From Mizuhopecten yessoensis (taxonomy: Eukaryota): a stretch of 55,565 nt of DNA. Shown piece after piece: positions 2,457-28,541 of the stretch; positions within the stretch are counted from its first letter, which is position 1; each line of letters opens with the position of its first letter. The position numbers and the translations under genes are program-made. The notes below the pieces were generated by a model. The model was not told the DNA's origin, did no database searches, and saw only the letters and a list, made by a program, of their open reading frames with translations. The DNA lies in contig NW_018408567.1 of NCBI RefSeq assembly GCF_002113885.1, positions 1,067,537 to 1,123,101 of the forward strand, written 5' to 3'.

Positions 2457-3760
2457 CGTTTGTGACAAAAAATAAACAAACGGGGCATTATTACAAAGTA
2501 GTTAAAACATAGAAGTTAATAGCAGGTAGTATATAGTATGGCATATAAATGTATTAATACTCCTTTGCGTATTTATCTCCATACAAAAGAACCTATAGTA
2601 CAATGATTAAATGTTATTGCCCTAAATTGATCGATACATGCTTTATCCCGGGGATATAGTCAATTTTACCAGGCTATAGATTTAGGAGCTATGTCCCTGT
2701 CATAGCAAACCAACTAAAACATTTACGCTAAGGAAATATGCCATTCACCCCTCTAAATCCATGCCACTATACACCACATGGACTGACCCAATCAGGTGAG
2801 GTGGTCGATTGTTCGAATTAGGATTTAATGTGTTAAAGAATTCAAATATAAAATATCTGCGATGCAGCTTTGACGTAAGGTGGCATTGTCTTAACCTTTT
2901 ATGCATAAAGACAAGTATGATGTCTTAGGAGGCGAGTTTTGTACTGCCTTTCTATATATGTATACATACATGTACGTACCTGTTCAAATACTTCAAATAC
3001 TAGTTTTTGTCTTGAAAGAATATGACTTGTTTTCATTATAGCAACAAAAAAAGGAAAATGAAAAACACCATGTATATCTTTAACGAAATATAATTTGCTA
3101 ATCAAAATGCAACCTTAAAAAAATGTTATTATTTATCGGATGAAATTAATGTGACCGTTTTAAATGATAATATATTGTTACATACTTGTATGACACTGTT
3201 AACTGTACATAAGTAATGATAGATAAAATACTTTAATACAAGACACTATTAACTTAACATAATTAATTATTATTCATTTACGTTATGTATGGCACTGTTA
3301 ACTCTATATAATTAATTAACAATAATTAACTAATCAGTCATTCAAAAAATGAAGTCGATCATATTTTTGACTTTCATTTCAAATTGATGTGGTCAGTGCT
3401 TATAATAATAAACTTATATATAAATAAACACGGTAATCTTGCTAGTAAAATACACGTGCTAGATAAAAGTTGCATACATATTGATGCAATCGACACATAT
3501 AAGGTTAGATCACAGTTATCTTAGTTAAGAGTATCACAGAATGCATAAAGTTTCATGCATAGGTATTTCATCAATTAAATGGCATGTGCCTAATATACAT
3601 ACATGCTAATATAGCAAACAATAAAAATTGATATAGTTATACGCAAATATAGCATAATCTAAAATATTGATATAATTCAGATAAGAAGTCTATTTAGAAA
3701 AGAAACTTTCATCCTCCACGATGTTAAAGCTTAAGTACAGAACAGTTTTATGTTCATAGT

Positions 3761-6541
3761 TTACAAATCACCGTCATGAATGTGTCCTGTGATTTTGCTT
3801 TGAAGAATAGAAAGTTCCTCAGTAAATGATTTGCTCTCTGACGCTAAAATCCCAAACAGTTTTTCTAGTTTGGTCAAATCTGGTCTTCTAGCATCCAGTA
3901 CAAACTGCAGTGGATTGAAACCTTTCTTCTTTAATTGAGTACACATGTACCCTTTTTCGTGTTGGTCCAGAAAGGAGACGAACACTAGCCGAGCTGGGAA
4001 CACTTCGTTATGGTATTTCTCAAAGAGATCGGCAAAATTTCCAACATTTTCCCCTTCGTCTGTCACAATAATGAAGGTCTTTACAACCCTCTTTTGTTTG
4101 TAGAAAGGCATCAAGGCCGACGATGGATTTGTGGAGCCGCTTGCCTCAGTTTTCATTGCAAGTTTCAGGGCTTCGTCGACATTTTCTGGCACCTTTTTTG
4201 GGCGCTTACAATTATGGTTGAATACAACAAGGTCGGCAGAACAAATCGAGCATAATATTCCAGTAATGACAGAACTAGTCCTGACCGCGATATCCATGGA
4301 CCCTGAACGATCTCCGAGTACAACGACAGGAGAATCTAGCTTCAGTTTGACGTTCTGAAGTTTAGATTCGGCAAGGCTGAGCAACGTTTTCATGAATGGA
4401 ATCTTATATTTTCCTGTCGCCCTCCTGCCACAGCGAAATCCGCGTGCTAGTTCTTTCAATGTGATTAACCTGTCCATCATCTTTCCGATTGGAAGGTCGC
4501 TTGTGTCTCCTGTGTCAAGTCGTTGCATTATTATTTCATCCACCTGGCGGCATTCTATGTCTTCATAATACCATAACACAGTGTCGAGTCGAGGTTCTGA
4601 TGTGGCAATTTTAATCTTTGACTCTACATTAAGGTACTTTTTAAATTTCCGGCTATGGGCATATGGAATGTCACACGTTTTTAATTTGTCGTTTATGTTC
4701 TTTTCGTTCAGGTCCTCGCAAGTGTGCACTACGGTTCCACAGGGTGCTGACTGGCCAAAACAGTAGGACAGAAACCAGGGTAGATTGGGAAAGTCCTCTA
4801 CAGGATTAAAATGGCAAATGTCGGCTAGTTTCTTCCATGGTTTTTTAGGAAGATGGAGGGCATAGCGTTCGAGCTCTTCCTTGCTCAATGTTTTTGTCCA
4901 TTTACGAACATTTTTACATATCGATCCACTTGCAGATCCCTTTTTAGGCTGTAGCTTTCTCATGCTATTTATTTTGCACTTCAATTTGTCAATTTTATGA
5001 CGAGACACCTTTCCCCTTGCCGTTTGAAGTCGTTTTAGGGTTTTTTCTCCTTGTCGGATAAGTCTTCCTGAATCCACGATTTGTAAAGCTTTCAATATTT
5101 CAACCATTCCATATCTGTCGCGATCGCATATGAACTCTGTGGACATCTTGAAATCGTTTCTTGCCCAGCTGGCAGCTAAAGCGCGTACTCGGACTTGTTG
5201 ACGTAGCTCCACCCCCTTTAGATGTAATAACGACATGCATGCAATATACCTGCTACGATTTTGATTTTGAGCTTGGATATGTTCATCCGTTGAAGCGTTG
5301 GCAAAGAAAAATTCGCTGACATTTTGATCAATATCAACCACGGTTGCATTCATTTTACTTCTGTGAGGCGATCTACTTTTACTATGACTTCTTCTGTGAG
5401 GCGTTACGCTTCTACTACGACTTCTTTTCCCGGGCCGTCTACGCCTAGTACGCCCCCTTCCCCGAAACCGTCTACGTTTAATTTTGCTCCTTCTGCGAGG
5501 CGATCTACTTCTACTGCGACTAAAGCGAGGCGACCTACTTCTACTGCGACTAAATCGAGGCGATCTACTTTTCCTATGACTCCAGCGACGCGAAATACTT
5601 CGACTACGCCTTCTTCTGCGACGCGATCTACTTCTGCTACGCCTCCAGCGAGGCGAAATACTTCGACTACGCCTTCTTCTGCGACGCGATCTACTTCTGC
5701 TACGACTCCAGCGAGGCGATCTACTTCTGCTCCGATTCTTTCTTTGAGTACTTGTTATGTAACTCAAGCCTTCAGGCGATCGACTCCTACTACAACTCCT
5801 ACTTACACTGCGACTCGATAAAACTCCTGGTGAGTCAGAGTAATTAGAATATGGCGATACCGATCGGCTTAATATCGATGAGTAAGTTGGAGATAGCTGT
5901 CGTGGAGAGAATGTATTTCTACGAGAACTCCTTGATCTGCGCGAGTATTTCATCATTTGAAACCGATTTGGGGAGAGACTACCATACCGTGGACCGATTG
6001 TTTTCGACGAGTTATTTCTACATGACGCGTCTCTTCTGTGTGGTTCATATAGATCCTGACTGACACATAGCAACGGACAACTTCTACTCCTTGAAATTTT
6101 TCTTGGACTTCGCCATCTTGATCTAGGTGATCGACGTCGCCAGGCTGTTATGTATTGCCATGGAGAACACGATCTGGAATAGGATCTTCTACGCCATCTT
6201 GGAGAGTATGACCTAGAGCGTGATCGTCGAATCTGGGTGTTCCGTCTTGGAGAACATGATGGTCGAATCGGGGTTCTCCGTCTTGGAGAACATGATGGTC
6301 GTGTCGGAGTTCTACTTCGTCTTGGAGAACATGCTGGTTGAGTCGGGGTTCTACTTCGTCTTGGAGAACATGATGGTCGAGTCGGGGTTCTCCGTTTTGG
6401 AGAACATGCTGGTCGAGTCGGAGTTCTACTCTGTCTTGGAGAACATGATCGTCGAGTCGGGGTTCTACTCCGTCTTAGTGAATAGGAACTAGGAACACAT
6501 TGGTGAGCTCGTCCCCTATTCCTCTTGCGTCTCCTTCCCAT
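3761..6541 (-). CDS. Gene A: RS/protamine-like N-terminus fused to a Ro60/TROVE-like helical region and a C-terminal vWA (MIDAS) domain, 926 aa, intronless CDS
   Basis: Residues 1-396 are R/S/P repeats (RSRTPTRPSCSP; SRSRSRRRRRRSRSISPRW). From M397 (5353) the sequence looks globular: PWKKLADICHFNP resembles the TROVE W-x-x-x-(D/L)-x-x-x-x-x-H-x-x-P segment. The vWA MIDAS is VVVLGDRSGSM (DRSGS at 4298-4312), followed by SGSTN and FIIVTDE, in the same order as in the Ro60 vWA domain. Confidence 0.85.
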   Translation of the reverse strand: MGRRRKRNRGRAHQCVPSSYSLRRSRTPTRRSCSPRQSRTPTRPACSPKRRTPTRPSCSPRRSRTPTQPACSPRRSRTPTRPSCSPRRRTPIRPSCSPRRNTQIRRSRSRSYSPRWRRRSYSRSCSPWQYITAWRRRSPRSRWRSPRKISRSRSCPLLCVSQDLYEPHRRDASCRNNSSKTIGPRYGSLSPNRFQMMKYSRRSRSSRRNTFSPRQLSPTYSSILSRSVSPYSNYSDSPGVLSSRSVSRSCSRSRSPEGLSYITSTQRKNRSRSRSPRWSRSRSRSRRRRRRSRSISPRWRRSRSRSRRRRRRSRSISRRWSHRKSRSPRFSRSRSRSPRFSRSRSRSPRRRSKIKRRRFRGRGRTRRRRPGKRSRSRSVTPHRRSHSKSRSPHRSKMNATVVDIDQNVSEFFFANASTDEHIQAQNQNRSRYIACMSLLHLKGVELRQQVRVRALAASWARNDFKMSTEFICDRDRYGMVEILKALQIVDSGRLIRQGEKTLKRLQTARGKVSRHKIDKLKCKINSMRKLQPKKGSASGSICKNVRKWTKTLSKEELERYALHLPKKPWKKLADICHFNPVEDFPNLPWFLSYCFGQSAPCGTVVHTCEDLNEKNINDKLKTCDIPYAHSRKFKKYLNVESKIKIATSEPRLDTVLWYYEDIECRQVDEIIMQRLDTGDTSDLPIGKMMDRLITLKELARGFRCGRRATGKYKIPFMKTLLSLAESKLQNVKLKLDSPVVVLGDRSGSMDIAVRTSSVITGILCSICSADLVVFNHNCKRPKKVPENVDEALKLAMKTEASGSTNPSSALMPFYKQKRVVKTFIIVTDEGENVGNFADLFEKYHNEVFPARLVFVSFLDQHEKGYMCTQLKKKGFNPLQFVLDARRPDLTKLEKLFGILASESKSFTEELSILQSKITGHIHDGDL
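6235..6475. repeat. 30/33-bp coding repeat in gene A (RSRTPTRPSCSP)
   Basis: The motif cgtcttggagaacatg recurs about 8 times. Confidence 0.85.
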
Positions 6542-8323
6542 GCCAACACCTCAATAATGATTCAATCAAATACAAATGTTTTTGTTTATATTAGCTGTTG
6601 TAATGACCCAGCTGATAATTCATTACGGAATGTACAGCGATCTTCAATTTCTTGTTGATATGCACGGCACTTGTTGCTGTTCATTGTACCTGAAATTGTT
6701 CATTAAAATCTGATGTAATAATACAGGTCTTCATTAAATATGATGTACGACTTGTAAGATCCCACATATGAAATGACAACAGTCTATATTAGGTTGTTTG
6801 CAGTGGATTTCTTTTCATTGTCATCGTATCAATTGTCGATATGGCGATCACTTATTGCCAATTCTAAAGTTCAAAAACAATTTCAGATGTTGATAGACAC
6901 TTCAAAACATCTAGCATCTGCTTAATATACTACCATAATCCATAATATGCAGATATTATAACCATATCCTCAGTGATTGATTGGCTGGAATTCATCAAAT
7001 ACTGTATGTACAAGCACTTATTAACACATTTTTTTCATACATCCAAAACGATATGATTGTAAAGGGGAAATGTCAATATCCCACACGCTCACTTACAGTA
7101 GAATGAAAAACACACATGTGTATTGAATAGAAAATCATTCAACCGATTTAATGGTCCGCACCATAGTCGGTTTGTTACGCAATCGTTACAGCTTCCCACT
7201 GTCACTGATATATATAAGCGTCGTTAACTCGAATATGTGGCTATGTAACAGCGTGGCAATATCAATCGTTAAATTAAAGTACCGATCGTAGATATATACT
7301 AGCACTCGTGTAGAACGTTCTGTATACGTATACAAAGCGTAGTCTGGTCGTATATATGGTATGTGTGTGTACTCACACTAACCTGTGTATATACGCACAA
7401 AGAAGTAGTCCCGTGTTATAATTAACCGTTTTTTACTGTCATGAAAGATATACTTTAAATTGTTACCATGTATATCTATATATAGACAGTATTTTTTCCC
7501 CGTACAACAGATACACCACTAAACAAGATTTTTTCTGTGTTGTGCAATAGTAACAGACTAATTAAAACGTCCCATAGGAATATATAGGAAGAAACACACA
7601 TAAAGAATCTAAATATGGAAATTACAAACAACTATAATGGAAACAGCACAGTCAGTATACTAGTTAAAAATTATAAAGAATCATATTTGCTTTTATTCAA
7701 GTATAGCATACAAACATATTAAAAGTATTGTAGTTGTTTTTCTTGCTAGTGTTAACTACGTATGATAGCGTGTAACTAAAACTTGGATATCATGATAATC
7801 AACGGCAATTATGCATAAACATGTATGTATTTTTACTTTAAAAGTAGATTTTATCAGGACTTGGTGGGGTTTTTTTTAAATTTTTAATCGGGTAAAACAT
7901 ATACAGAGCATTAAGTAACGAGTAAGTACATAAGTCGGGATCCAAGTTTTGGAACTGTTTTATTTTTTATTATTATTTTCATGCTTATAGAATACGTATC
8001 ACAGATATTTGCTGACATAATAGAAAATATTAGCACATAACACTTATGTAAGATTTGGAAATATCCTAGTTACCACAATAAGGAGTTTTGATATTTTATG
8101 TATAGTGTGATGTATAGCATTATTATATACAGTGGACTCGCAAATTGTTTGTTTAAATAAAAACATGTTATATTTATTCTTTAATAACACCTAGGATACT
8201 GTTAAAAAGAAGGTTACGGTTGAACGGTTCATTTATTTTGGATTACCTTTTAACTAAGACTACAAGGAGTGGCTATGTATTACCAACAAGATGGTATGCA
8301 AAATACTCTTTATTATGCATGTA

Positions 8324-9155
8324 TTTATTAGTCTCGTACCGATGAAACCGGGGAGACAAAAGGTTTTGTCTCCGTCCGTCCGTCCATTACCTTTGGTTAA
8401 AGTTTGTGTTAAAGTTTTGAAATGGCTCACCGTTCACTTAATAATAGTGTTAGGATTCTGGTTGTATGTACAGAGGTTCTTTAGGGGTCTAGCATTAATG
8501 TGTTGTTTAGTGAAAGTGGATTGTTTTCTTTTTCTTTTTCCTTTTCACATGTTTTGGACTTACATGTGACTATCTTGGCCAAAATCTGTAGGTTAAAGTT
8601 TGTGTTAAAGTTTCGTAATGGCTCACCGTTCACTTAATAATAGTGTTAGGATTCTGGTTGTATGTACAGAGGTTCTTTAGGGGTCTAGCATTAATGTGTT
8701 GTTTAGTGAAAGTGGATTGTTTTCTTTTTCTTTTTCCTTTTCACATGTTTTGGACTTACATGTAAATATCTTGGCCAAAATCTGTAGGTTAAAGTTTCGG
8801 TTAAAGTTTCGTACTGGCTCACCGTTCACTTAATAACAGTGTTAGGATGCTGCTATTACGTACACAGTTTCTTTATTGGGGTTTAGCATTAATGTTGTTT
8901 AGTGATAGTGGAAAACTAATTTTATTGTTTTTGAATTTTTGACATGTTTTGGACTTAACTATCTTGGCCAAAATATGCAGGTTAAAGTTTGGGAAAGTAC
9001 GGGCATTAGATTGCATGGTCCGCTATGTATTTACTGTGTACTCTGGAAAATCGTTTGAAAATATTGTCGCTTGCAATATCTTGTTTGCTGTGTATCTGTT
9101 GGGGGCGTCGGTAGGGGACATGTATTGATTCATCCATACCCACAGAATGCTTGTT
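8324..9155 (+). mobile_element. Non-autonomous Helentron-associated element (HINE/Pearl-like) with internal ~196-bp tandem repeats
   Basis: T-rich start, 5' subTIR gtctcgtaccga with nearby inverted repeat, (gtcc)n microsatellite, units starting at 8395, 8591, 8787 and 8980, 3' subTIR tcggtaggggac, end cttgtt. Confidence 0.8.
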
Positions 9156-11265: not shown

Positions 11266-12250
11266 TACTGTAAAAAGCAACCAACCGTGTTTAAAAAAGA
11301 CAAAAACACCAGATTTTTTTATATAACGAAGTTTTATTTGCAAATCAACAAATTTTAACATCTGTTAAAATCTCTTATCATTTATTGTTTGAAAATGTGT
11401 ATGTGCTTTTTTTATATTCCAACTCGTTGTTACATACATTTATGGAGTTGTTATCTTATTTGTATATAACCACATATATGACATTGTTAATATAACTGAG
11501 TATGATTGATGATAGATAATTTACATTATGTTAAGCAGTGTAAACTCAATATAAGGAATTATGAATATCATTAAATATATATAATACACTACTACTATAG
11601 CACCGTTTGCATTGAGTGTAGATAATCAATAATAGATAACTTGGTCAGTGAAAAATAGTTCTGTATATAAATATACACACAAACATACATACATGAATTG
11701 AAATGTTAACTGTCTTTAATTAATAATAAATATTTTAGTTCATGAATGACACTAATAACTTAACTGTTAAGTTAATTGTTCATAATGAGTTAAACATACT
11801 TTTCTAAATATTTAATATACATGTTAACTTAACTGTATATTATTAAATATACATACTTTGCTGAATGTATAGCACATTTTACTTAACAGTAGGTAATAAA
11901 TAAAAAAAACAAAATGCTAAATGTATGACACTGAAATTTAACTGTTAACCCAATTGTTCATAATCAGTGAGAACTAATTTCCTGTATAAATGGAAGTGAT
12001 TATTGTATGTAAGTAACAATATACAATTGACAATATATATAATACTGTTAACTATACATAATTAAAGTTTTTTATATATATATATGGCACTGTTAATTGT
12101 ATATACATTTGTAATTGATAATAAATAATTAACTTTATGTATGACACTGTTAACATATTTGAACACCATCAATATTTTTTTCAATGATTAATGATTTATT
12201 AGATGTGTGATACGGATAACTGTACATAATTCATGATAAATTACTTAATA

Positions 12251-12500
12251 TGCTGTAAGCGTACCTATATTAGCACATTCACATTTTAGCGAAAAGAATG
12301 GGGTAGGACTCAAAAGCGCACTCTTTGCTGAGCAGAATCGCGGTACCTAATTTCATTTTCTGTCCCTTGTCACATTTTATGGTATTGAGATAGCTTGTGC
12401 AATGTAGTCTAATTTTGCGATGGACGTGAATTAACGGAGGAAAGGTTAGCGCGAAGGACGTACAGAATAAAATACCGCTAAAATTAGTACACTTACAGTA
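12251..12500. mobile_element. TA-flanked MITE (ctgtaa...ttacagta family); related copy near 31688-31885
   Basis: Inverted ends ctgtaagcgtac...tattagc and gctaaaattagtacacttacagta. Confidence 0.55.
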
Positions 12501-12659
12501 TTACGACATCGTTAAGTTTACTATATAATTACTGATGAAAGTACAAACCGGTTATATATAAAGAACGTGATATCAACAGGACTTTCAGTTGACATTAGTG
12601 AGTTCCGTGGTTTAATCTTCCACGATGTGAAAATACAAAATATGTTATAAAAAACATCG

Positions 12660-13281
12660 TCATGATCTTCAGTGAATGATTTCGCCTCTGACAAATCAAA
12701 ATCTTGAGCATTTTTTCTGGTTCGTTCAAATCGGGCCTTCTTTCATCAGGTACAAACTGCAGTAAGTGGATGTTAAACTTTCTCCTTTAATGCAGTCCAC
12801 GTGTAAACTTTTCGGTGTTTGTTCCAAAGGGAAAGGAACACTAGCCGAGCTAGGTACACTTTGGTTTGGTATTTCCCGCAAAAATCTGCAAAAATGTCTT
12901 CGTCTGTCACTAAAACAATGATGTCCTCTGTTGTTTGTAGAAAGCCTTGAAAGTCATTTGACATTTGTTAGCTTAGCTTTTAATTTCCATTTTGTTAAAT
13001 AACAACAAAGTTCATGTTCACATTTTTAAATCATTGTCAAATATTATTTATGATGAGAACCTCTCCCCGTTGCTTTAGCTATTTTTCTCCTTAACAGACA
13101 CGTCTTCAAACTTTGTTACGCTTTCAACAGCTCTCTCTCTCTGTCTTTATAAATATTGAAACCTTTTTATTGCCAAGCAAGCAGTTAGCGCACGTACTCG
13201 GACTCGTAGATCCTCCCCTTTTGAATTAACACTGGATACTACGAAACATCTGCTACGATTTTGACTTGGGCTTTGACATGT
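12660..13281 (-). pseudogene. Decayed TROVE/vWA remnant of gene B
   Basis: Frameshifted fragments match gene A: TDEHVKAQ vs TDEHIQAQ; QNRSRC...RVRVRALTA vs QNRSRY...QVRVRALAA; VLVTDEDIFADFCGKYQTKVYLARLVFLS vs IIVTDEGENVGNFADLFEKYHNEVFPARLVFVS; SEAKSFTED vs SESKSFTEE. About 0.6 kb remains versus about 1.5 kb in gene A, and the MIDAS segment is missing. Confidence 0.85.
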
Positions 13282-14106
13282 TCATCCGTTTAAACGTTCG
13301 CAAAGAAAATGATCAATGTCAAACACGGTTGCATTCGAGTTTTCTCTGCCTTTTTCATGTTTGCAATATGTATTTGTATTGATCCTACTATGTGATGCGA
13401 TCCTTCTATAACGTTTCCTTCCGCGATGCGATCCACTTCTACTACGTTTACTTCTGCAATGCGATCCACTTCTACTGCGTTTACTTCTATGATGCGATCC
13501 ACTTCTACTACGTTTACTTCTGCAATGCGATCCACTTCTACTACGACTCCTTCTATGATGCGATCCACTTCTACTACGACTTCTTTTGCAATGTGACACA
13601 CTTCTATGACGTTTCTTTCCGTGATGCGATCCACTTCTATTACGACTCCTGTTCGGCGATCTACTTCTGCTATGTTTCTTTCTGTGATGCGATCCACTTC
13701 TTTTATGTCCTCTAGGATGTGATCTACTTCTACTACAACTCTTTCTTTGCGTGCTAGTACTAAAACCCATCGCTTGAAACCGATCTAGGGAGAGGCTACC
13801 ATAACGTAGAGTTAATCCTTCCAACGAATGATGTCTAACTGATGAGTCCCTCCCATGCAATACAGATAACTGGCTGTGACTGGATCGAAGCAACGGACAA
13901 CTTCTACTCCTTGAAATGTTCCTTGAACTTTGCCATCGTGATCTAGGCCTCGGAGAACACGATCTGGAACAGGATAGGGGAATTGGGGTCCTACTCCGGC
14001 CTCGAGAATGTGACCGAGAACGTGATCGTTGAGTCGGTGAACTACTCCGCCGTTTTGAGTGCTGATGAGCTCGCCGCCTATACTTCCTTCCGCGTTTCTT
14101 TCCCAT
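13282..14106 (-). CDS. Gene B: truncated paralog of gene A; 274-aa R/S/H-rich protamine-like ORF
   Basis: Collinear with gene A: MGKKRGRKYRRRAHQ vs MGRRRKRNRGRAHQ; ISRSRSCPLL in both; RYGSLSLDRFQAM vs RYGSLSPNRFQMM; NATVFDID vs NATVVDID. A short deletion after NATVFDID shifts the frame to a stop at 13282. Confidence 0.7.
   Translation of the reverse strand: MGKKRGRKYRRRAHQHSKRRSSSPTQRSRSRSHSRGRSRTPIPLSCSRSCSPRPRSRWQSSRNISRSRSCPLLRSSHSQLSVLHGRDSSVRHHSLEGLTLRYGSLSLDRFQAMGFSTSTQRKSCSRSRSHPRGHKRSGSHHRKKHSRSRSPNRSRNRSGSHHGKKRHRSVSHCKRSRSRSGSHHRRSRSRSGSHCRSKRSRSGSHHRSKRSRSGSHCRSKRSRSGSHRGRKRYRRIASHSRINTNTYCKHEKGRENSNATVFDIDHFLCERLNG
13400..13700. repeat. 30-bp coding repeat in gene B (RSRSGSHHRS-like)
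   Basis: The motif gatgcgatccacttctactacg recurs with 30/33-bp spacing. Confidence 0.85.
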
Positions 14107-15262
14107 GCTTACTACTCAAGTACGATTGTGTTAAATACAAATGTTTTGTTTATGGTTTAGGAAATATTCAAGCAACCTTTATAATCTTGATAACAGGCAC
14201 GGCAATTGATAATGTTCATGAAGATATGTTGTAATCATAGGAGTGTTCAACAAACGTTCATGCACGAAGCCACATCAGCTGAATTCACAACATATGCAAT
14301 TTCAGGTGTCTAAATATATTTATAACGTCCAGAATCTGGTCGGTATACTATCATAATTTGTAGTCAAAGATATTATGAGGATATCCTTCCTGAAAGTTTG
14401 ACCGGAATTCCGTAACACATCCACCAATCCTGATGTACATTCTATAATTAAAACATTTTGTCAAACATCAAAATAAATATGATTGCTTAGGGGAAAATTC
14501 AATACCCCATCCAGTATCCTGCAATAGCGTGAAAACCACACATGTGTGATAAACAGAAAATCATGTCCAGGATTTAACAGTCCACGATAGTTATAAGATT
14601 ACATTATAATGTTACTCCAACATCTCCGTGAAATAGTTGAAATATGTTGCTACGTCCATGAGTTTCTTTCCCGTACATTAACGTACACCGTAATTACAAT
14701 CGTTTAACTGACGTGCTAAGATTACCGACCGTATATATACTAACACTGAAGAAGAACGTATGATATACGTTTAGAAAACGTAGTCTGGTCGTATCTATAT
14801 CAAGTAACGACGTGTGCTGTACGTTTGCCAAACGATACATATATTGACCTATACATACTTAGTCCCATGCTATTATTAGCATATATTCACTCTTATCAAT
14901 GAAAGATGAACGTAATATACACACACAGGGGACTGCACATTTAAAATGTGTTAAAAGATACAGTTTACAAAAAATAAATTTCACTATATCATAAAGCTGT
15001 TTCGTCCTTCCAGAAGTCATAGAAAATCATGTGGGGCCAGAAGTTGAAAATCTAAATTTTGTGAACAACTATTGAAACAGATGGTCAGGTGCGTAAAATC
15101 CCTTACTTAATTAATTAATATAATTTTTTTATTTAATTTTCAATGTATATTAATATATAGACAATAATTTCTCAATACAATTGATGCATCGACCATGATA
15201 GAATATATTTCTTTTTAACAACTGATATTGGTACTTATTGGCGATGTAGTATCACATATCTT

Positions 15263-20397: not shown

Positions 20398-22836
20398 TCA
20401 CTGACTGATAACGTCTGCGATGTGGTAACGGCAACCGTTTCGGTTCCAAGTAACATCAACTTCCACCACATCGCCACCTGACGTACGCTTACGTCTCTCC
20501 GTCCTTTTACTTATACATCGACATCGTTCAGGTGAGCTACTGCAACTACTTGAAAGAGACGACATACTACTTCTCCAAGGTGATGTGCTGCAAGTTCGAC
20601 AGTTCGACCTACTCCTTCTTCGACACCGTCGCCAAGGAGATAAACTGCAACTCCTTCGAGTGTATGAACTACCCCTACTTCGACGCCGTCGCCAAGGTGA
20701 TATGCTGCAGCTTCTTCGAATATGCGACGTACTCCTACTTCGGCGCCGTCGCCAAGGTGATGTGCTGTAACTCCTTCGATCATTCGACCAGCTCCTATTT
20801 TGATCTCGTCGCCAAGGTGACAAACTGCAACTCCTTCGAATATACGACCTACTCCTACTTCGGCATTGTCGCCAGCGTGATGTTCTGAAGCTCATTCTAT
20901 CATTCGATCCACTCCTACTTCGAGAACGTCGACAAGGTGATTTACTATAACTCCGTCGACGAGGAGATCTGCTTATGCTACGATCCCTGTACCAAGAATA
21001 ATATCTACTCCTTCGCTGGAGTGGAAACCTTGAAATCCCCCACCGGGGATATATATTTCTGTAGCAACCTCTATTGCGGAAGCGTGTTAGCCGTGACCTG
21101 TTTGTACCGCTACATCTTCGCCCAGGTGATCTAGTCCTGCTGCGTCTACTGCTAGTACTGCGACTCCTTAGCAAATGACGTTTTCTACTTGTACTCCGAC
21201 GCCATCGCTGTGGCGGTTTACTAAGACTGCGACTCCTTCGCCGTGGTGATTTACTATTACTGCGACTCCTTCGCCCTGGTGCGTTACTAATACTGCGACT
21301 CCTTCGCCCTGGTGAGTTACTAGGACTGCGACTCCTTCGCCCTGGTGAGTTACTAATACTGCGGCTCCTTCGCCGTGGTGAGTTACTATTCCTGCGACTC
21401 CTTCGCCCTGGTGAGTCACTAATACTGCGACTCCTTCGCCCTGGTGAGTTACTAGGACTGCGACTCCTTCGCCCTGGTGAGTTACTAGTGCTGCGACTCC
21501 TTCGCCCTGGTGAGTTCCTATTACTGCGACTCCTTCGCCCTGGTGAGTTACTAATACTGCGGCTCCTTCGCCGTGGTGAGTTACTATTCCTGCGACTCCT
21601 TCGCCCTGGTGAGTTACTAAGGCTGCGACTCCTTCGCCCTGGTGAGTTCCTATTACTGCGACTCCTTCGCCCTGGTGAGTTACTATGACTGCGACTCCTT
21701 CGCCCTGGTGAGTTACTAATACTGCGGCTCCTTCGCCGTGGTGAGTTACTATTCCTGCGACTCCTTCGCCCTGGTGAGTTACTAATACTGCGGCTCCTTC
21801 GCCGTGGTGAGTTACTATTACTGCGACTCCTTCGCCTTGGTGATTTACTATTACTGCGACTCCTTCGCCGTGGAGAGTTACTAAGACTGCGACTCCTTCG
21901 CCCTGGCGAGTTACTAAGACTGCGACTCCTTCGCCCTGCTGAGTTACTAAGACTGCGACTCCTTCGCCGTGGGGATTTACTATTACTGCGACTCCTTCGC
22001 CGTGGCGAGTTACTAAGACTGCGACTCCTTCGCCCTGCTGAGTTACTAAGACTGCGACTCCTTCGCCGTGGCGAGTTACTAAGACTGCGACTCCTTCGCC
22101 GTGGGGAGTTACTAAGACTGCGACTCCTTCGCCGTGGGGAGTTACTATTACTGCGACTCCTTCGCCGTGGTGATTTACTAAGACTGCGACTCCTTCGCCC
22201 TGGTGATTTACTAATACTGCGACTCCTTCGCCCTGGTGAGTTACTAGTGCTGCGACTCCTTCGCCGTGGTGATTTACTAGTGCTGCGACTCCTTCGCCAT
22301 GGTGAGTTACTATTACTGCGACTCCTTCGCCCTGGTGCGTTACTAATACTGCGACTCCTTCGCCCTGGTGAGTTACTAATACTGCGACTCCTTCGCCCTG
22401 GTGAGTTACTAATACTGCGGCTCCTTCGCCGTGGTGAGTTACTATTCCTGCGACTCCTTCGCCCTGGTGAGTCACTAATACTGCGACTCCTTCGCCCTGG
22501 TGAGTTACTATGACTGCGACTCCTTCGCCGTGGTGAGTTACTATTCCTGCGACTCCTTCGCCCTGGTGAGTTACTAAGACTGCGACTCCTTCGCCCTGGT
22601 GAGTTACTAGTGCTGCGACTCCTTTGCCGTGGGGTTATATTAGTACTGCGATGGCATCGCTGTGGCGGTTTACTCAGACTGCGACTCCTTCGCCGCGGTG
22701 AATTACTAGAACTGCGACTCCTTCGCCGTGGTGATTTACTAGAACTGCGACTCCTTCGCCCTGGCGATTCACCAGCACAGAGACTCCTCCGCCTTGGTGA
22801 TTTACTGGCACTGTGATACCTTTCCACAGACATCAT
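20398..22836 (-). CDS. Gene C: 812-aa protamine-like/RS-repeat protein with no globular domain
   Basis: ATG-to-TGA ORF made of about 54 decapeptide repeats (RRSRS[ILN]SNSP[GR]) followed by Cys/Trp/Tyr-containing 20-aa repeats (e.g. RSRSYIRRSCSLSPWRR). The frame stays open across the repeats and their unique flanks. Confidence 0.75.
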   Translation of the reverse strand: MMSVERYHSASKSPRRRSLCAGESPGRRSRSSSKSPRRRSRSSSNSPRRRSRSLSKPPQRCHRSTNITPRQRSRSTSNSPGRRSRSLSNSPGRRSRRNSNSPRRRSRSHSNSPGRRSRSISDSPGRRSRRNSNSPRRRSRSISNSPGRRSRSISNSPGRRSRSISNAPGRRSRSNSNSPWRRSRSTSKSPRRRSRSTSNSPGRRSRSISKSPGRRSRSLSKSPRRRSRSNSNSPRRRSRSLSNSPRRRSRSLSNSPRRRSRSLSNSAGRRSRSLSNSPRRRSRSNSKSPRRRSRSLSNSAGRRSRSLSNSPGRRSRSLSNSPRRRSRSNSKSPRRRSRSNSNSPRRRSRSISNSPGRRSRRNSNSPRRRSRSISNSPGRRSRSHSNSPGRRSRSNRNSPGRRSRSLSNSPGRRSRRNSNSPRRRSRSISNSPGRRSRSNRNSPGRRSRSTSNSPGRRSRSPSNSPGRRSRSISDSPGRRSRRNSNSPRRRSRSISNSPGRRSRSPSNSPGRRSRSISNAPGRRSRSNSKSPRRRSRSLSKPPQRWRRSTSRKRHLLRSRSTSSRRSRTRSPGRRCSGTNRSRLTRFRNRGCYRNIYPRWGISRFPLQRRSRYYSWYRDRSISRSPRRRSYSKSPCRRSRSRSGSNDRMSFRTSRWRQCRSRSRSYIRRSCSLSPWRRDQNRSWSNDRRSYSTSPWRRRRSRSTSHIRRSCSISPWRRRRSRGSSYTRRSCSLSPWRRCRRRSRSNCRTCSTSPWRSSMSSLSSSCSSSPERCRCISKRTERRKRTSGGDVVEVDVTWNRNGCRYHIADVISQ
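20565..20960. repeat. 60-bp coding tandem repeat in the 3' part of gene C
   Basis: The motif gtcgccaaggtga and its variants recur every 60 bp (near 20628, 20688, 20748, 20808, 20868, 20928). Confidence 0.9.
21190..22810. repeat. 30-bp coding tandem repeat inside gene C
   Basis: Unit ctgcgactccttcgccctggtgagttactaata-type with a strict 30-bp period and substitutions only, no visible indels. Confidence 0.95.
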
Positions 22837-26564: not shown

Positions 26565-28541
26565 ATGATGTTTATACTTACAGATTCCAGCGTGAACGTG
26601 GAAGGCTGCATCTTGTTGGATATGACCTCGTTTGATTCATTCCCAGGAGGGATCGAGCCCCCCGAGTCGGATAATCCGTTGCAGTGTCGGTATTGCGGCA
26701 AAATTTTCACGAGGTCCAATTATCGGAGGGAGCATGAGCGGATACATACCGGAGAGAAACCATACGAATGTGGATTCTGTGCACGACGCTTTAACAGCAA
26801 GGGAAGTTGTAACAAACACGAACAGAGTCACATGAACCGAGAGAAGAAATTGGCGGCACTGACATGGAGACCATTTACTTGTCATATCTGTCAACAAACC
26901 TTCAAGCACGAGAGTGTTCTCAAGAAGCATATCCTGTTTCACACAGGTCTGAAGAAATATCAATGTGAAATTTGTTTGAAGTTTTACTTCACCTCCTATG
27001 ATCTAAGAGTTCATGTCCGTTTTCACACGGGTGAAAAGCCGTACAAATGCCGTATGTGCAATGTGTTTTTCACAACAGGTAGAAAACGGAATCTTCATGA
27101 GAAATTTCACGTTCGGCAAGACACTCTACAATGCAAGAAATGCAAAACAATTTTCCGATCAGTCAACGCACTCAAACTGCACAAATATAAAAGTCAGTTA
27201 CGACGAACCGGTTGTGCGGAACCGGATGATTCATACGCTGTAAATAACTCGGCTGTCATTGATGATGGGAGTGATGGTTCAGTCCATACCACATTAGAGC
27301 TTGAGGAAGGGGATAGCAGGATGGTCCAAGCTACTGGAATAGAAAGCCAAGATACCAGTGGCAATGATGACAGCAGTTGTTTAGTAGTCAATGAAAACAT
27401 AGATGACCAAGATGATAACTCAGTTGAGCTTGACATAGAGGTGCTTGGCAACCACTACCGAAACGAAACTGCAGCAAATGAGACATTGCTTTCAAATGGT
27501 CTCCCATCGATGAAGACTTCTCCATCGAAAAACATCCAGAAAAGGAGCCAGACACGGGTGGTATTTCCAACAGGTCTATTTAGATCAACAGATCAAGGAA
27601 TTGAGGTTAGCCAGCCATTATCACAAAGTAATCGTACTACAAAACAGTCAATTCCTAAAGGGATCGACAGTATCGACTCCAGTCGAGGATTAAGTATATC
27701 TAGATATCATGATACCAGATTTATTTCTGATGATTCTACAGGAGGCAGTTACGTAGAGGAAAGGTCTTATGAATATGATGCTGAAGAGGTCATGTCCAAA
27801 TCTGTCGATTCCTGTGAACCTGGTAACATCGAAACAGGTACTTGCAGACTAGGTGCAACCGGATTTGGGTTATCTACTAGTCCTAACGATGGTCCTAATA
27901 ATGTCATCGCTGTCAAGACAGAAGTGACTGATGAACCTCAAACAACGCAAGTGTTTACATCAGCATTGGGTGTTCTGAATATGGGTTCTACCGAAGAAAT
28001 TACAAGTCTAGCAAAGCAAAGAATTCTGAACGATCGAAGTTCTGATTCTTCATCCTTGCGGATAAGTAATGCAGCTATTAGTCCTTTGCCTTTACCAAGA
28101 ATCACAAACGTTGCTGCTTTCAGAAAGGAGCCAAGTTCATCTCCATCTTCGTCCACGATTGGCAATGTGGTGCCTGTGTATAATTCAATTACACCACAGC
28201 TTGTGAAAACGTCGGTTATCTTCGACAGAACTCTTGACGAACCACGTTTGACCAGGCCAGATACGCCTTCTACTTCAGAGCTTACAGTAGTATCCACGTC
28301 TGTGAAGCACACACAGACTAAAATGATAGACGACGCCGATCTCCTATTTGCAGAAATGGAGTCGGCAAGGAAGGTGTTCGAGTGTAAACACTGTAGCATC
28401 ATCTTCCGGGATTTCACTATGTACCTTGTCCACAAGACACTTCACGTCGATACCAGCCGTCCATTTGTTTGCCACTTGTGTGGCAACGAGGCTAGAGACA
28501 AAGTAGATTTTCACTCTCACCATATTTGGCACATGAAGTGA
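26565..28541 (+). CDS. Ikaros/Hunchback-type C2H2 zinc-finger transcription factor (single large coding exon)
   Basis: Five canonical N-terminal C2H2 fingers with TGEKPY/TGLKKY linkers plus one degenerate finger. The C-terminal pair FECKHCSIIFRDFTMYLVHKTLH...PFVCHLCGNEARDKVDFHSHHIWH matches the Ikaros/Hunchback dimerization-finger pattern. A probable acceptor (tttatacttacag) ends at 26583, so the true start may be in an upstream exon or at the ATG at 26622. Confidence 0.9.
   Translation: MMFILTDSSVNVEGCILLDMTSFDSFPGGIEPPESDNPLQCRYCGKIFTRSNYRREHERIHTGEKPYECGFCARRFNSKGSCNKHEQSHMNREKKLAALTWRPFTCHICQQTFKHESVLKKHILFHTGLKKYQCEICLKFYFTSYDLRVHVRFHTGEKPYKCRMCNVFFTTGRKRNLHEKFHVRQDTLQCKKCKTIFRSVNALKLHKYKSQLRRTGCAEPDDSYAVNNSAVIDDGSDGSVHTTLELEEGDSRMVQATGIESQDTSGNDDSSCLVVNENIDDQDDNSVELDIEVLGNHYRNETAANETLLSNGLPSMKTSPSKNIQKRSQTRVVFPTGLFRSTDQGIEVSQPLSQSNRTTKQSIPKGIDSIDSSRGLSISRYHDTRFISDDSTGGSYVEERSYEYDAEEVMSKSVDSCEPGNIETGTCRLGATGFGLSTSPNDGPNNVIAVKTEVTDEPQTTQVFTSALGVLNMGSTEEITSLAKQRILNDRSSDSSSLRISNAAISPLPLPRITNVAAFRKEPSSSPSSSTIGNVVPVYNSITPQLVKTSVIFDRTLDEPRLTRPDTPSTSELTVVSTSVKHTQTKMIDDADLLFAEMESARKVFECKHCSIIFRDFTMYLVHKTLHVDTSRPFVCHLCGNEARDKVDFHSHHIWHMK

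Follow-up and report, generated by a model that had tools for sequence, protein, structure and literature searches.

What kind of protein results when a long arginine- and serine-rich tail precedes a folded core of ordinary composition, and how did such a protein arise? The question is raised by a 55,565-nucleotide stretch of the genome of the scallop Mizuhopecten yessoensis (contig NW_018408567.1, positions 1,067,537–1,123,101; hereafter the window, whose first nucleotide is position 1). Its reverse strand, on which all features of the gene described below lie, carries a complete intronless open reading frame (ORF) of 926 codons plus a stop codon at positions 3761–6541. An in-frame TGA is present four codons upstream of the first methionine (M1), the start context of which is good (gttggcATGg), and no splice joints were reported in the reads or contigs mapped onto positions 2800–8000. 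An initial annotation had described the product as an unusual fusion of a protamine-like tail to a Ro60/TROVE-like protein with a von Willebrand factor A (vWA) domain; the ORF, its complete MIDAS (metal-ion-dependent adhesion site; DRSGS, GSTN and VTDE) and a basic helical motif are all present where it had placed them. We consider the gene to be best explained as a transcribed, retrogene-like copy encoding a Ro-type ring protein with an arginine/serine (RS)-rich tail, a reading to which, with identity and mechanism taken together, we assign a probability of roughly 65%. Its identity and evolutionary history, as an intronless scallop-lineage paralogue of an old, unnamed invertebrate family with a short arginine-rich N-terminus and a Ro60-type ring, we regard as highly probable.

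The folded core and its relation to Ro60

The core (residues 397–926) differs from the tail in having an ordinary amino-acid composition. Its first part is a predicted TROVE-like all-helical half (residues 397–731; positions 4349–5353), delineated from an AlphaFold2 model, VIA-align structural superposition and a weak collinear profile alignment to Ro60 motifs. This is followed by a vWA domain (residues 732–906; 3824–4348) and then by a C-terminal helix, as assigned from the model, Foldseek, VIA-align, hhalign comparison with a Ro60 profile and a match to phrog_850. The MIDAS is made up of the DxSxS motif (DRSGS, residues 744–748; 4298–4312), the threonine in GSTN (residues 802–805; 4127–4138) and the aspartate in VTDE (residues 826–829; 4055–4066). 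The most conserved helical motif of the family, PWKKLADICHFNP (residues 568–580; 4802–4840), has its W, L, A, H and P each at least 90% conserved.

The core has 158 homologues at E ≤ 1e-3, and the names, taxa and tallies given here rest on the best 120 of these. Represented among them are molluscs, annelids, nemerteans, echinoderms, hemichordates, amphioxus and rotifers, and some are from metagenome contigs that cluster with the rotifers in the tree. A typical member has ~590–600 residues and most are called `uncharacterized', while among the UniRef names at least seven are `TROVE domain-containing' and one is `VWFA domain-containing'. In an alignment of 55 sequences 30 columns are invariant, and all five MIDAS residues (D744, S746, S748, T804 and D828; core D348, S350, S352, T408 and D432) are among them, being identical in 55/55 members. 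Only sub-threshold Pfam matches to vWA models were obtained among the 55 members (VWA_CoxE in 15/55 and vWA_Ro60 in 5/55), and NCBIfam gave no match. Some bdelloid rotifer members are annotated with extra domains, including PF00352 (TBP), methyltransferases and PF01501 (P0044, P0049 and P0242 from rotifers; also P0087 and P0269), and these may reflect genuine fusions or, alternatively, the merging of gene models. Literature searches found no publication on this family, here called the RGG-TROVE-vWA family after its arginine/glycine-rich (RGG) N-terminus, or on its RS-tailed retrocopy, and the database names are automatic only. The fold family is known; within it, no earlier description of the RGG-TROVE-vWA family or of the RS-tailed retrocopy seems to exist.

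With the 55-sequence alignment as input, AlphaFold2 modelled the 530-residue core at a mean predicted local distance difference test (pLDDT) score of 88.1 and a predicted template-modelling (pTM) score of 0.77. When the full core was searched against the PDB with Foldseek, ranks 1–12 were all Ro60, Rsr or TROVE structures (E = 2.7e-9 to 2e-6, template-modelling scores 0.39–0.53) with alignments covering 506–575 columns, and isolated vWA domains ranked after them. A VIA-align search of 48,161 representative chains matched the core to Xenopus Ro60 (1yvp_A; Z = 18.1, r.m.s.d. 6.8 Å, 427 residues aligned), Deinococcus Rsr (2nvo_A; Z = 16.0, 434 residues) and a phage Ro60 (9l5y_B; Z = 15.2, r.m.s.d. 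4.6 Å, 406 residues). Each of these three matches spans both domains, whereas chains with a vWA domain only reached Z ≤ 14.4 over ~170 residues.

The vWA domain alone could carry such a full-length match, and the helical half was therefore also modelled by itself (pLDDT 93.0, pTM 0.83). At Z ≥ 8, only three of the 48,161 chains were matched by VIA-align, namely 2nvo_A (Z = 11.8), 1yvp_A (Z = 9.8) and 9l5y_B (Z = 9.5), with 276, 283 and 246 of the 335 residues aligned, respectively, and collinear with Ro residues ~23–364; the next match was a 44-residue hairpin at Z = 7.1. What leads us to assign the helical half to the Ro type is how specific this result is, how much of the half it covers and that it runs collinear with the vWA domain.

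Comparison of sequence profiles gave a weaker signal in the same direction. In hhalign, comparison of the family profile with one Ro60 sequence gave E = 0.025, after which a 37-sequence Ro60 profile was built; against this profile E was 2.8e-4 with a probability of 41% over 190 columns. The alignment covers the vWA domain and the last ring helices and pairs the DxSxS motif, the threonine and the aspartate with those of the Ro60 MIDAS. A local alignment of the two helical halves pairs GSASGAV..IRKW...ALH.P.EPWKKLADICHFNP with Ro60 GTGWGRAHRRAI..WY...LA.HVTKYRNR.GW.H.DVLRLAH.KP, with PWKKLADICHFNP aligned to GW.H.DVLRLAH.KP of Ro60. The only PHROG match for three of three members was phrog_850, `RNA-binding protein' (E = 9e-5 to 2.6e-3, the window protein being at 2.6e-3), located on the vWA domain, and the nearest ESM Atlas clusters (scores 0.95–0.97), from phages, giant viruses and cyanobacteria, either carry TROVE/vWA_Ro60 or are unnamed. 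The sequence-level ties to Ro60 are thus weak but consistent. Accepted Ro60 homologues are themselves separated by mutual r.m.s.d. values of 5.8–6.5 Å at 16–18% identity (PMC12135203, in part). Ro60 is described as having a split domain and its ring binds Y RNA and misfolded RNA, the role of its MIDAS being unclear (PMC12135203, in part). The model of the core has a HEAT-like helical domain, then a vWA domain, then a returning C-terminal helix, with a complete MIDAS. A Ro60-type ring-plus-vWA fold with an intact metal site is therefore supported as a prediction, and the model matches Ro60 and Rsr over both domains and no other vWA family, as the Ro-like ring of the initial annotation had anticipated.

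The label `Ro60/TROVE-like' holds for the fold and fails for Ro60 orthology and for a Pfam TROVE match. The Pfam TROVE model matches seven other places in the genome and none in the window. The scallop Ro60 itself is P0121 on contig C5581, with PF05731 and PF25045, and the ORF there is 100% identical to `60 kDa SS-A/Ro ribonucleoprotein-like [Mizuhopecten yessoensis]'. Because the annotated Ro60 sits elsewhere in the genome and the two family profiles resemble each other only marginally, the window protein, judged by sequence, is not its orthologue; it is a member of another, distantly related family that has the Ro fold. Pfam TROVE loci in the scallop genome include C82352:5976–6725, C2699:22825–23565, C5581:608438–609223 and C5569:2973031–2988544; they comprise two open frames of 475 residues and one of 484 residues (named Ro60), apparently with few or no introns, and a separate multi-exon locus, which suggests that Ro60-type genes are multi-copy in this genome.

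The tail, its transcripts and the origin of the copy

Residues 1–396 (5354–6541) form a tail with 31% Arg, 24% Ser and 10% Pro that contains 88 RS/SR dipeptides and five acidic residues and has a net charge of +130. It is delineated by its composition, by the only open frame of six and by equivalent tails in orthologues. The annotated frame has no stops in 396 codons and the other five have 9 to 46 stops each, so that the open frame exceeds chance by far. Tandem arrays make up most of the tail; their periods (30, 33, 39, 63, 75, 93 and 114 nucleotides) are multiples of three throughout. One array with a 39-nucleotide (13-codon) period (6243–6476; 6.2 copies) encodes (S/A)CSPRRSRTPTRP units in frame, and arrays of 30, 33, 63 and 93 nucleotides (5490–5735) encode RSRSRSPRF and RRRRRRSRSISPRW units, also in frame. 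Between them lies a non-repetitive island at residues 148–199 (5945–6100; KISRSRSCPLL...RYGSLSPNRFQMMKY), which is also present in the Argopecten orthologue and in a decayed neighbouring copy (copy B, see below). In an alignment of these three tails the motifs ISR[ST]RSCP.L and R..SLS..R[FY]Q recur at residues 148–199, and the start MG[RK][RK]R..R.RAHQ is common to the window gene and copy B.

Low-complexity RS- and arginine/proline (RP)-rich domain is a better label for this region than `protamine-like', which is loose wording: the tail is basic and rich in arginine and serine, but true protamines are small, with ~50% or more arginine, a share above the 31% of the tail.

Tails of this kind are restricted within the family. 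Among 115 members that could be placed relative to the core, the N-terminal extension has a median length of 45 residues and is RG-rich in 89; it is RS-rich in only two, the public model of the window gene and the Argopecten orthologue (P0002), the tail of which has 394 residues. A later search that admitted longer proteins added an orthologue from Ylistrum balloti (P0241; 1,086 aa, 78% core identity) with a tail of 559 residues. NCBI names P0241 `serine/arginine repetitive matrix protein 2-like' from the composition of its tail, a name that hides the Ro-like core. The three orthologue tails (396, 394 and 559 residues) have 29–32% Arg, 24–32% Ser and 7–10% Pro and have SRSCSRSRSP in common, and the intact Argopecten and Ylistrum cores are 73–78% identical to that of the window protein. 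A related transcript product, P0003 (557 residues, 61% identity), has only a short MGRGFGRN... start. The genome's own multi-exon paralogue, on contig C3225, has an RGG start, MRGRGRGGRGRGGRGRRGG (N-terminus also given as MRGRGRGGRGRGG).

The RG-rich N-termini of 89/115 members and the RGG start of the scallop's own paralogue lead us to see the tail as a replaced and expanded ancestral region and not as the result of a two-gene fusion; of the proposed `unusual fusion', the joining of tail and core stands and the union of two genes does not. By this comparison of sequences, the disordered arginine-rich N-terminus is ancestral, and the scallop copy has exchanged RGG for RS/RP and grown eight-fold. 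The RS tail is an unusual, lineage-limited variant, with only the scallop copies RS-rich.

Transcripts include the tail-coding region and M1. The stretch occurs in 20 of 24 listed runs, none of those 20 being on record as RNA, and four runs were mapped onto positions 2800–8000. Contigs of run X1 tile positions 3671–7313 and are absent from both flanks, as is expected of RNA and not of DNA; one contig of 1,949 letters (3671–5619) spans M397 and another runs from 5690 through M1 to 7313. Run X22, a declared RNA-Seq run, contributes 37 reads at 3496–5409 and 6106–6627 with empty flanks, and X23 and X24 from the same study contribute three and two reads. The long RS tail joined to a Ro-like core is thereby borne out, with transcripts covering the whole ORF including M1 and no start near M397. 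The contigs have a 3' untranslated end at 3671–3760, and neither AATAAA nor ATTAAA occurs in 3601–3760. The transcribed 5' leader (6542–7313), seen in the contigs of one run, contains 19 upstream ATGs and is partly conserved upstream of copy B. Past 7313 the X1 contig continues for 76 letters; these do not occur in the window and align to C1206:790150–790179 with one mismatch. A splice at 7313 was rejected, the window being without an AG acceptor at the break, and the candidates for the 76-letter end are an assembly chimera, a mis-scaffolded 5' exon, a polymorphism or an unexplained 5' end.

In the assembly searched (987.6 Mb, 82,659 contigs) the window copy matches the whole core (core residues 1–530) in one open frame, whereas the paralogues are split into six pieces on contig C20 and seven on C3225, spread over 7–8 kb. 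With one frame against split paralogues and no joints in RNA, the copy lacks the introns of a multi-exon parent, as retrogenes do, and we call it retrogene-like. A maximum-likelihood tree of 43 rows (the window protein and 42 of the 120 listed homologues; a quick search with SH-aLRT support only, which left out P0241 and 78 listed homologues, mostly unnamed or near-redundant) places the window protein, P0002 and P0003 in one clade (support 100%) that sits on a long stem (0.72), and the position of this clade among the lophotrochozoan sequences was not resolved. The path between the window and Argopecten proteins is 0.52, against ~0.135 between the canonical Argopecten and Pecten paralogues, which is roughly four times faster. 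A conservation of 90% or more in the other 52 sequences marks 117 columns, of which 101 are retained by the window protein, 103 by the Argopecten orthologue and 101 by P0003, and the changes in the window protein are conservative except for E830G (core E434G). Purifying constraint on the core despite its faster evolution is thus shown at the level of sequence conservation.

The neighbourhood holds further copies. A unit comprising the gene with flanking sequence (copy A, 3245–7357) is collinear with 12044–14798 (copy B) at 65–84% identity, parts of the leader and of the 3' flank included. The ORF of copy B (13282–14106, reverse strand) is open over 274 codons and RS-rich with most of the core deleted, and a remnant of the C-terminal core at 12665–12916 has stops; copy B is a decayed tandem duplicate of the whole A unit. 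Copy C (20398–22836, reverse strand; 812 codons) is composed almost purely of SP(G/R)RRSRSxSN repeats (30% Arg, 30% Ser), its C-terminal part having RRSCSxSPWRR units like those in the Ylistrum orthologue tail, and no remnant of a TROVE/vWA core was detected alongside it. Upstream of the gene, a ~106-nucleotide unit at 8395–8500 recurs at 8591–8696 (98% identity) and 8787–8894 (85%) as a short tandem repeat. Farther away, a forward-strand ORF of 658 codons (26565–28541) has C2H2 zinc-finger-like motifs with HTGEKPY linkers at both ends and a long serine-rich middle.

Weighing the alternatives

Several results weigh against a transcribed, RS-tailed Ro-type ring protein of retrogene-like origin. 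As regards the fold, the full protein matched none of the Pfam families at E ≤ 1; TROVE (PF05731) was absent from the list of 25 families matched by the 55 members, with nine unlisted families each matching at most one member; and PDB sequences were matched neither by phmmer with the core nor by the family profile. The helical half alone had no Foldseek match at E ≤ 1e-3, Ro60 (9nfa_A) appearing only at rank 36 with E = 0.68, and its VIA-align Z scores of 9.5–11.8 lie under ~13, a range in which, according to the tool, scores can be generic for helical repeats. Between the two helical halves, hhalign gave a weak E of 0.033 with a probability of 1.5% in local mode and nothing in global mode (E = 0.73). 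As regards the product, X1 is RNA only by the guess of the tool, expression is low and uneven in X22–X24 (11–12 million records each), and no raw reads fall on 5410–6105, the most repetitive part, a kind of dip that by the tool's own warning does not count as a finding. The 19 upstream ATGs would hamper translation from M1, the public gene model (P0001, 730 aa) begins at M197 and the Argopecten orthologue carries the public flag `LOW QUALITY PROTEIN'. The retrogene-like assignment derives from the absence of introns only, with the parent not resolved in the tree.

The tail might instead serve as a protamine-like condenser of DNA or chromatin in male germ cells, the cluster then being one of sperm nuclear basic proteins in which the core is accessory or is being lost. 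Its polycationic nature, the retention of long open RS-rich ORFs in the tandem copies B and C with the core broken or absent, and an expression that differs more than tenfold between samples of one study all fit this explanation, and retrogenes are often expressed in testis. We nevertheless consider it unlikely. Some 400 residues at 31% Arg are unlike the small arginine-rich protamines, and the core is well conserved in three genera, so the core of copy A is not being lost. In the part of the bivalve sperm-protein literature consulted (PMC5550673, in part) no scallop sequence of this kind appears, and no paper was found that links yessoensis, testis and `arginine repetitive matrix'.

Rather unlikely too is a shorter product only, beginning at M397 (the 530-aa core) or at M197 (the 730-aa public model), for which the upstream RS-coding region would be untranslated leader. 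The public start at M197 and the length of a leader with so many upstream ATGs speak for it; against it stand a 396-codon frame that is open where five others are closed and repeat periods that are without exception multiples of three. Upstream of M196/M197, the point at which the public model begins, lie both the conserved islands and the N-terminus that copy B has in common, the Argopecten and Ylistrum models include their tails and the best start context is at M1. A conserved start at M397 was rejected: no relative has methionine in that column (0/54) and at least 15 residues precede it in 51/54, so that M397 is an incidental methionine.

A transcribed processed pseudogene, or a functionless decaying duplicate, would likewise be intronless, fast evolving and weakly expressed among decayed neighbours; this we regard as very improbable, given an intact 926-codon ORF that keeps 101/117 conserved columns with mostly conservative changes and all five MIDAS residues, and intact orthologues in two other genera at 73–78% core identity. 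That the helical half is an unrelated α-solenoid, only the vWA domain resembling Ro60 by convergence or generic vWA similarity, can practically be dismissed: the half alone lacks a significant sequence or Foldseek match and helical repeats often give middling Z scores, but the same three Ro proteins are the sole chains at Z ≥ 8 with 246–283 of 335 residues collinear, the order of the domains is that of Ro60, as is the C-terminal helix that follows the vWA domain, the strongest motifs of the family are paired with the strongest TROVE motifs of Ro60, and accepted Ro60 homologues are as far apart as noted above (5.8–6.5 Å, 16–18% identity; PMC12135203, in part).

A possible mechanism and comparison with known systems

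In the highly probable history of the gene, an ancestral RGG box of ~45 residues has been replaced and expanded to an Arg/Ser/Pro tail of ~400 residues by in-frame minisatellite growth, ahead of a predicted TROVE-like HEAT-repeat toroid closed by the vWA domain with its metal-binding MIDAS. For the RS-tailed Ro-type ring protein, a mechanism can be proposed tentatively and at less than even odds, by analogy with Ro60 and with the behaviour of RGG and RS regions as generally known. The ring may grip structured or misfolded small RNAs as Ro60 does, and the polycationic tail may add non-specific nucleic-acid affinity and set localization. Control would have moved from arginine methylation in the relatives to a serine-phosphorylation switch in the scallop retrocopy, with speckles, condensates or condensing germ-cell chromatin as candidate destinations, the last suggested by the polycationic tail-only neighbours.

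A more speculative extension, which we think improbable, begins from a second, unrecognized Ro-type ribonucleoprotein (RNP) ring in non-vertebrate animals. Its scallop retrocopy would have been captured by the male germ line, where the RGG region became a phospho-switchable, protamine-like RS polymer that tethers the RNA-chaperone ring to condensing chromatin or germ granules, with copies B and C as stand-alone sperm basic proteins. If this were true, a route from an RNA-binding protein to a new family of sperm nuclear proteins would be visible.

As a ring for RNA quality control and as an autoantigen, Ro60 has been studied extensively. The present analysis indicates that animals have a second family, widely conserved, for which the same fold is predicted; it lies outside Pfam membership, and its N-terminal RGG box argues for RNA binding. 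In the scallop retrocopy the low-complexity region has been swapped from RGG to RS with the folded ring kept under constraint, which makes it a natural experiment in the retuning of an RNP protein by disordered tails; together with the tail-only neighbour copies, the locus may show how highly basic germ-line proteins originate. Current understanding is unchanged until the RNA partners, the tissue and the translated product are measured.

Among known systems, Ro60 (RO60/TROVE2; Xenopus 1YVP/1YVR, human 9NEN) and Rsr (Deinococcus 2NVO) have the same domain order as the window protein, with a HEAT-repeat ring, predicted in the latter, followed by a vWA domain and a complete MIDAS; they differ in that identity is only 12–14%, that the window protein has no Pfam TROVE match and that Ro60, judged from the consensus of the 37-sequence profile, is without the arginine-rich N-terminal tail that the window protein has. 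The Ro60 homologue of Thermus phage phiLo (9L5Y) is, like the scallop core, a very divergent ring plus vWA domain that is recognizable mainly by its fold. It binds Y-like RNAs encoded beside its gene (PMC12135203, in part), and no Rfam family was found in the window. Unlike the scallop protein, the phiLo homologue is viral and has no low-complexity tail.

SR-related proteins such as SRRM2 have a long RS/SR-rich domain, as does the window protein, and the likeness is compositional only: the window protein contains no RRM and no other Pfam splicing domain. Classical SR proteins have one or two N-terminal RRMs and a C-terminal RS domain; the window protein is without an RRM or any other Pfam domain and carries its RS region at the N-terminus. 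Protamines and protamine-like sperm nuclear basic proteins are small, very arginine-rich or H1-related sperm-specific chromatin proteins. Like them, the tail has a strongly basic character and much Arg and Ser, and fast-evolving copies stand in tandem at the locus, but at ~400 residues the tail is much longer, has a lower arginine share and is joined to a 530-residue folded core.

The closest counterparts are the other members of the RGG-TROVE-vWA family (e.g. Pecten maximus LOC117316564 and Lottia LOTGIDRAFT_229223), which share 40–50% identity across the 530-residue core and identical invariant residues with the window protein; they are set apart by a length of ~590–600 aa, a median RG-rich N-terminus of 45 residues, multi-exon genes in this genome and slower evolution.

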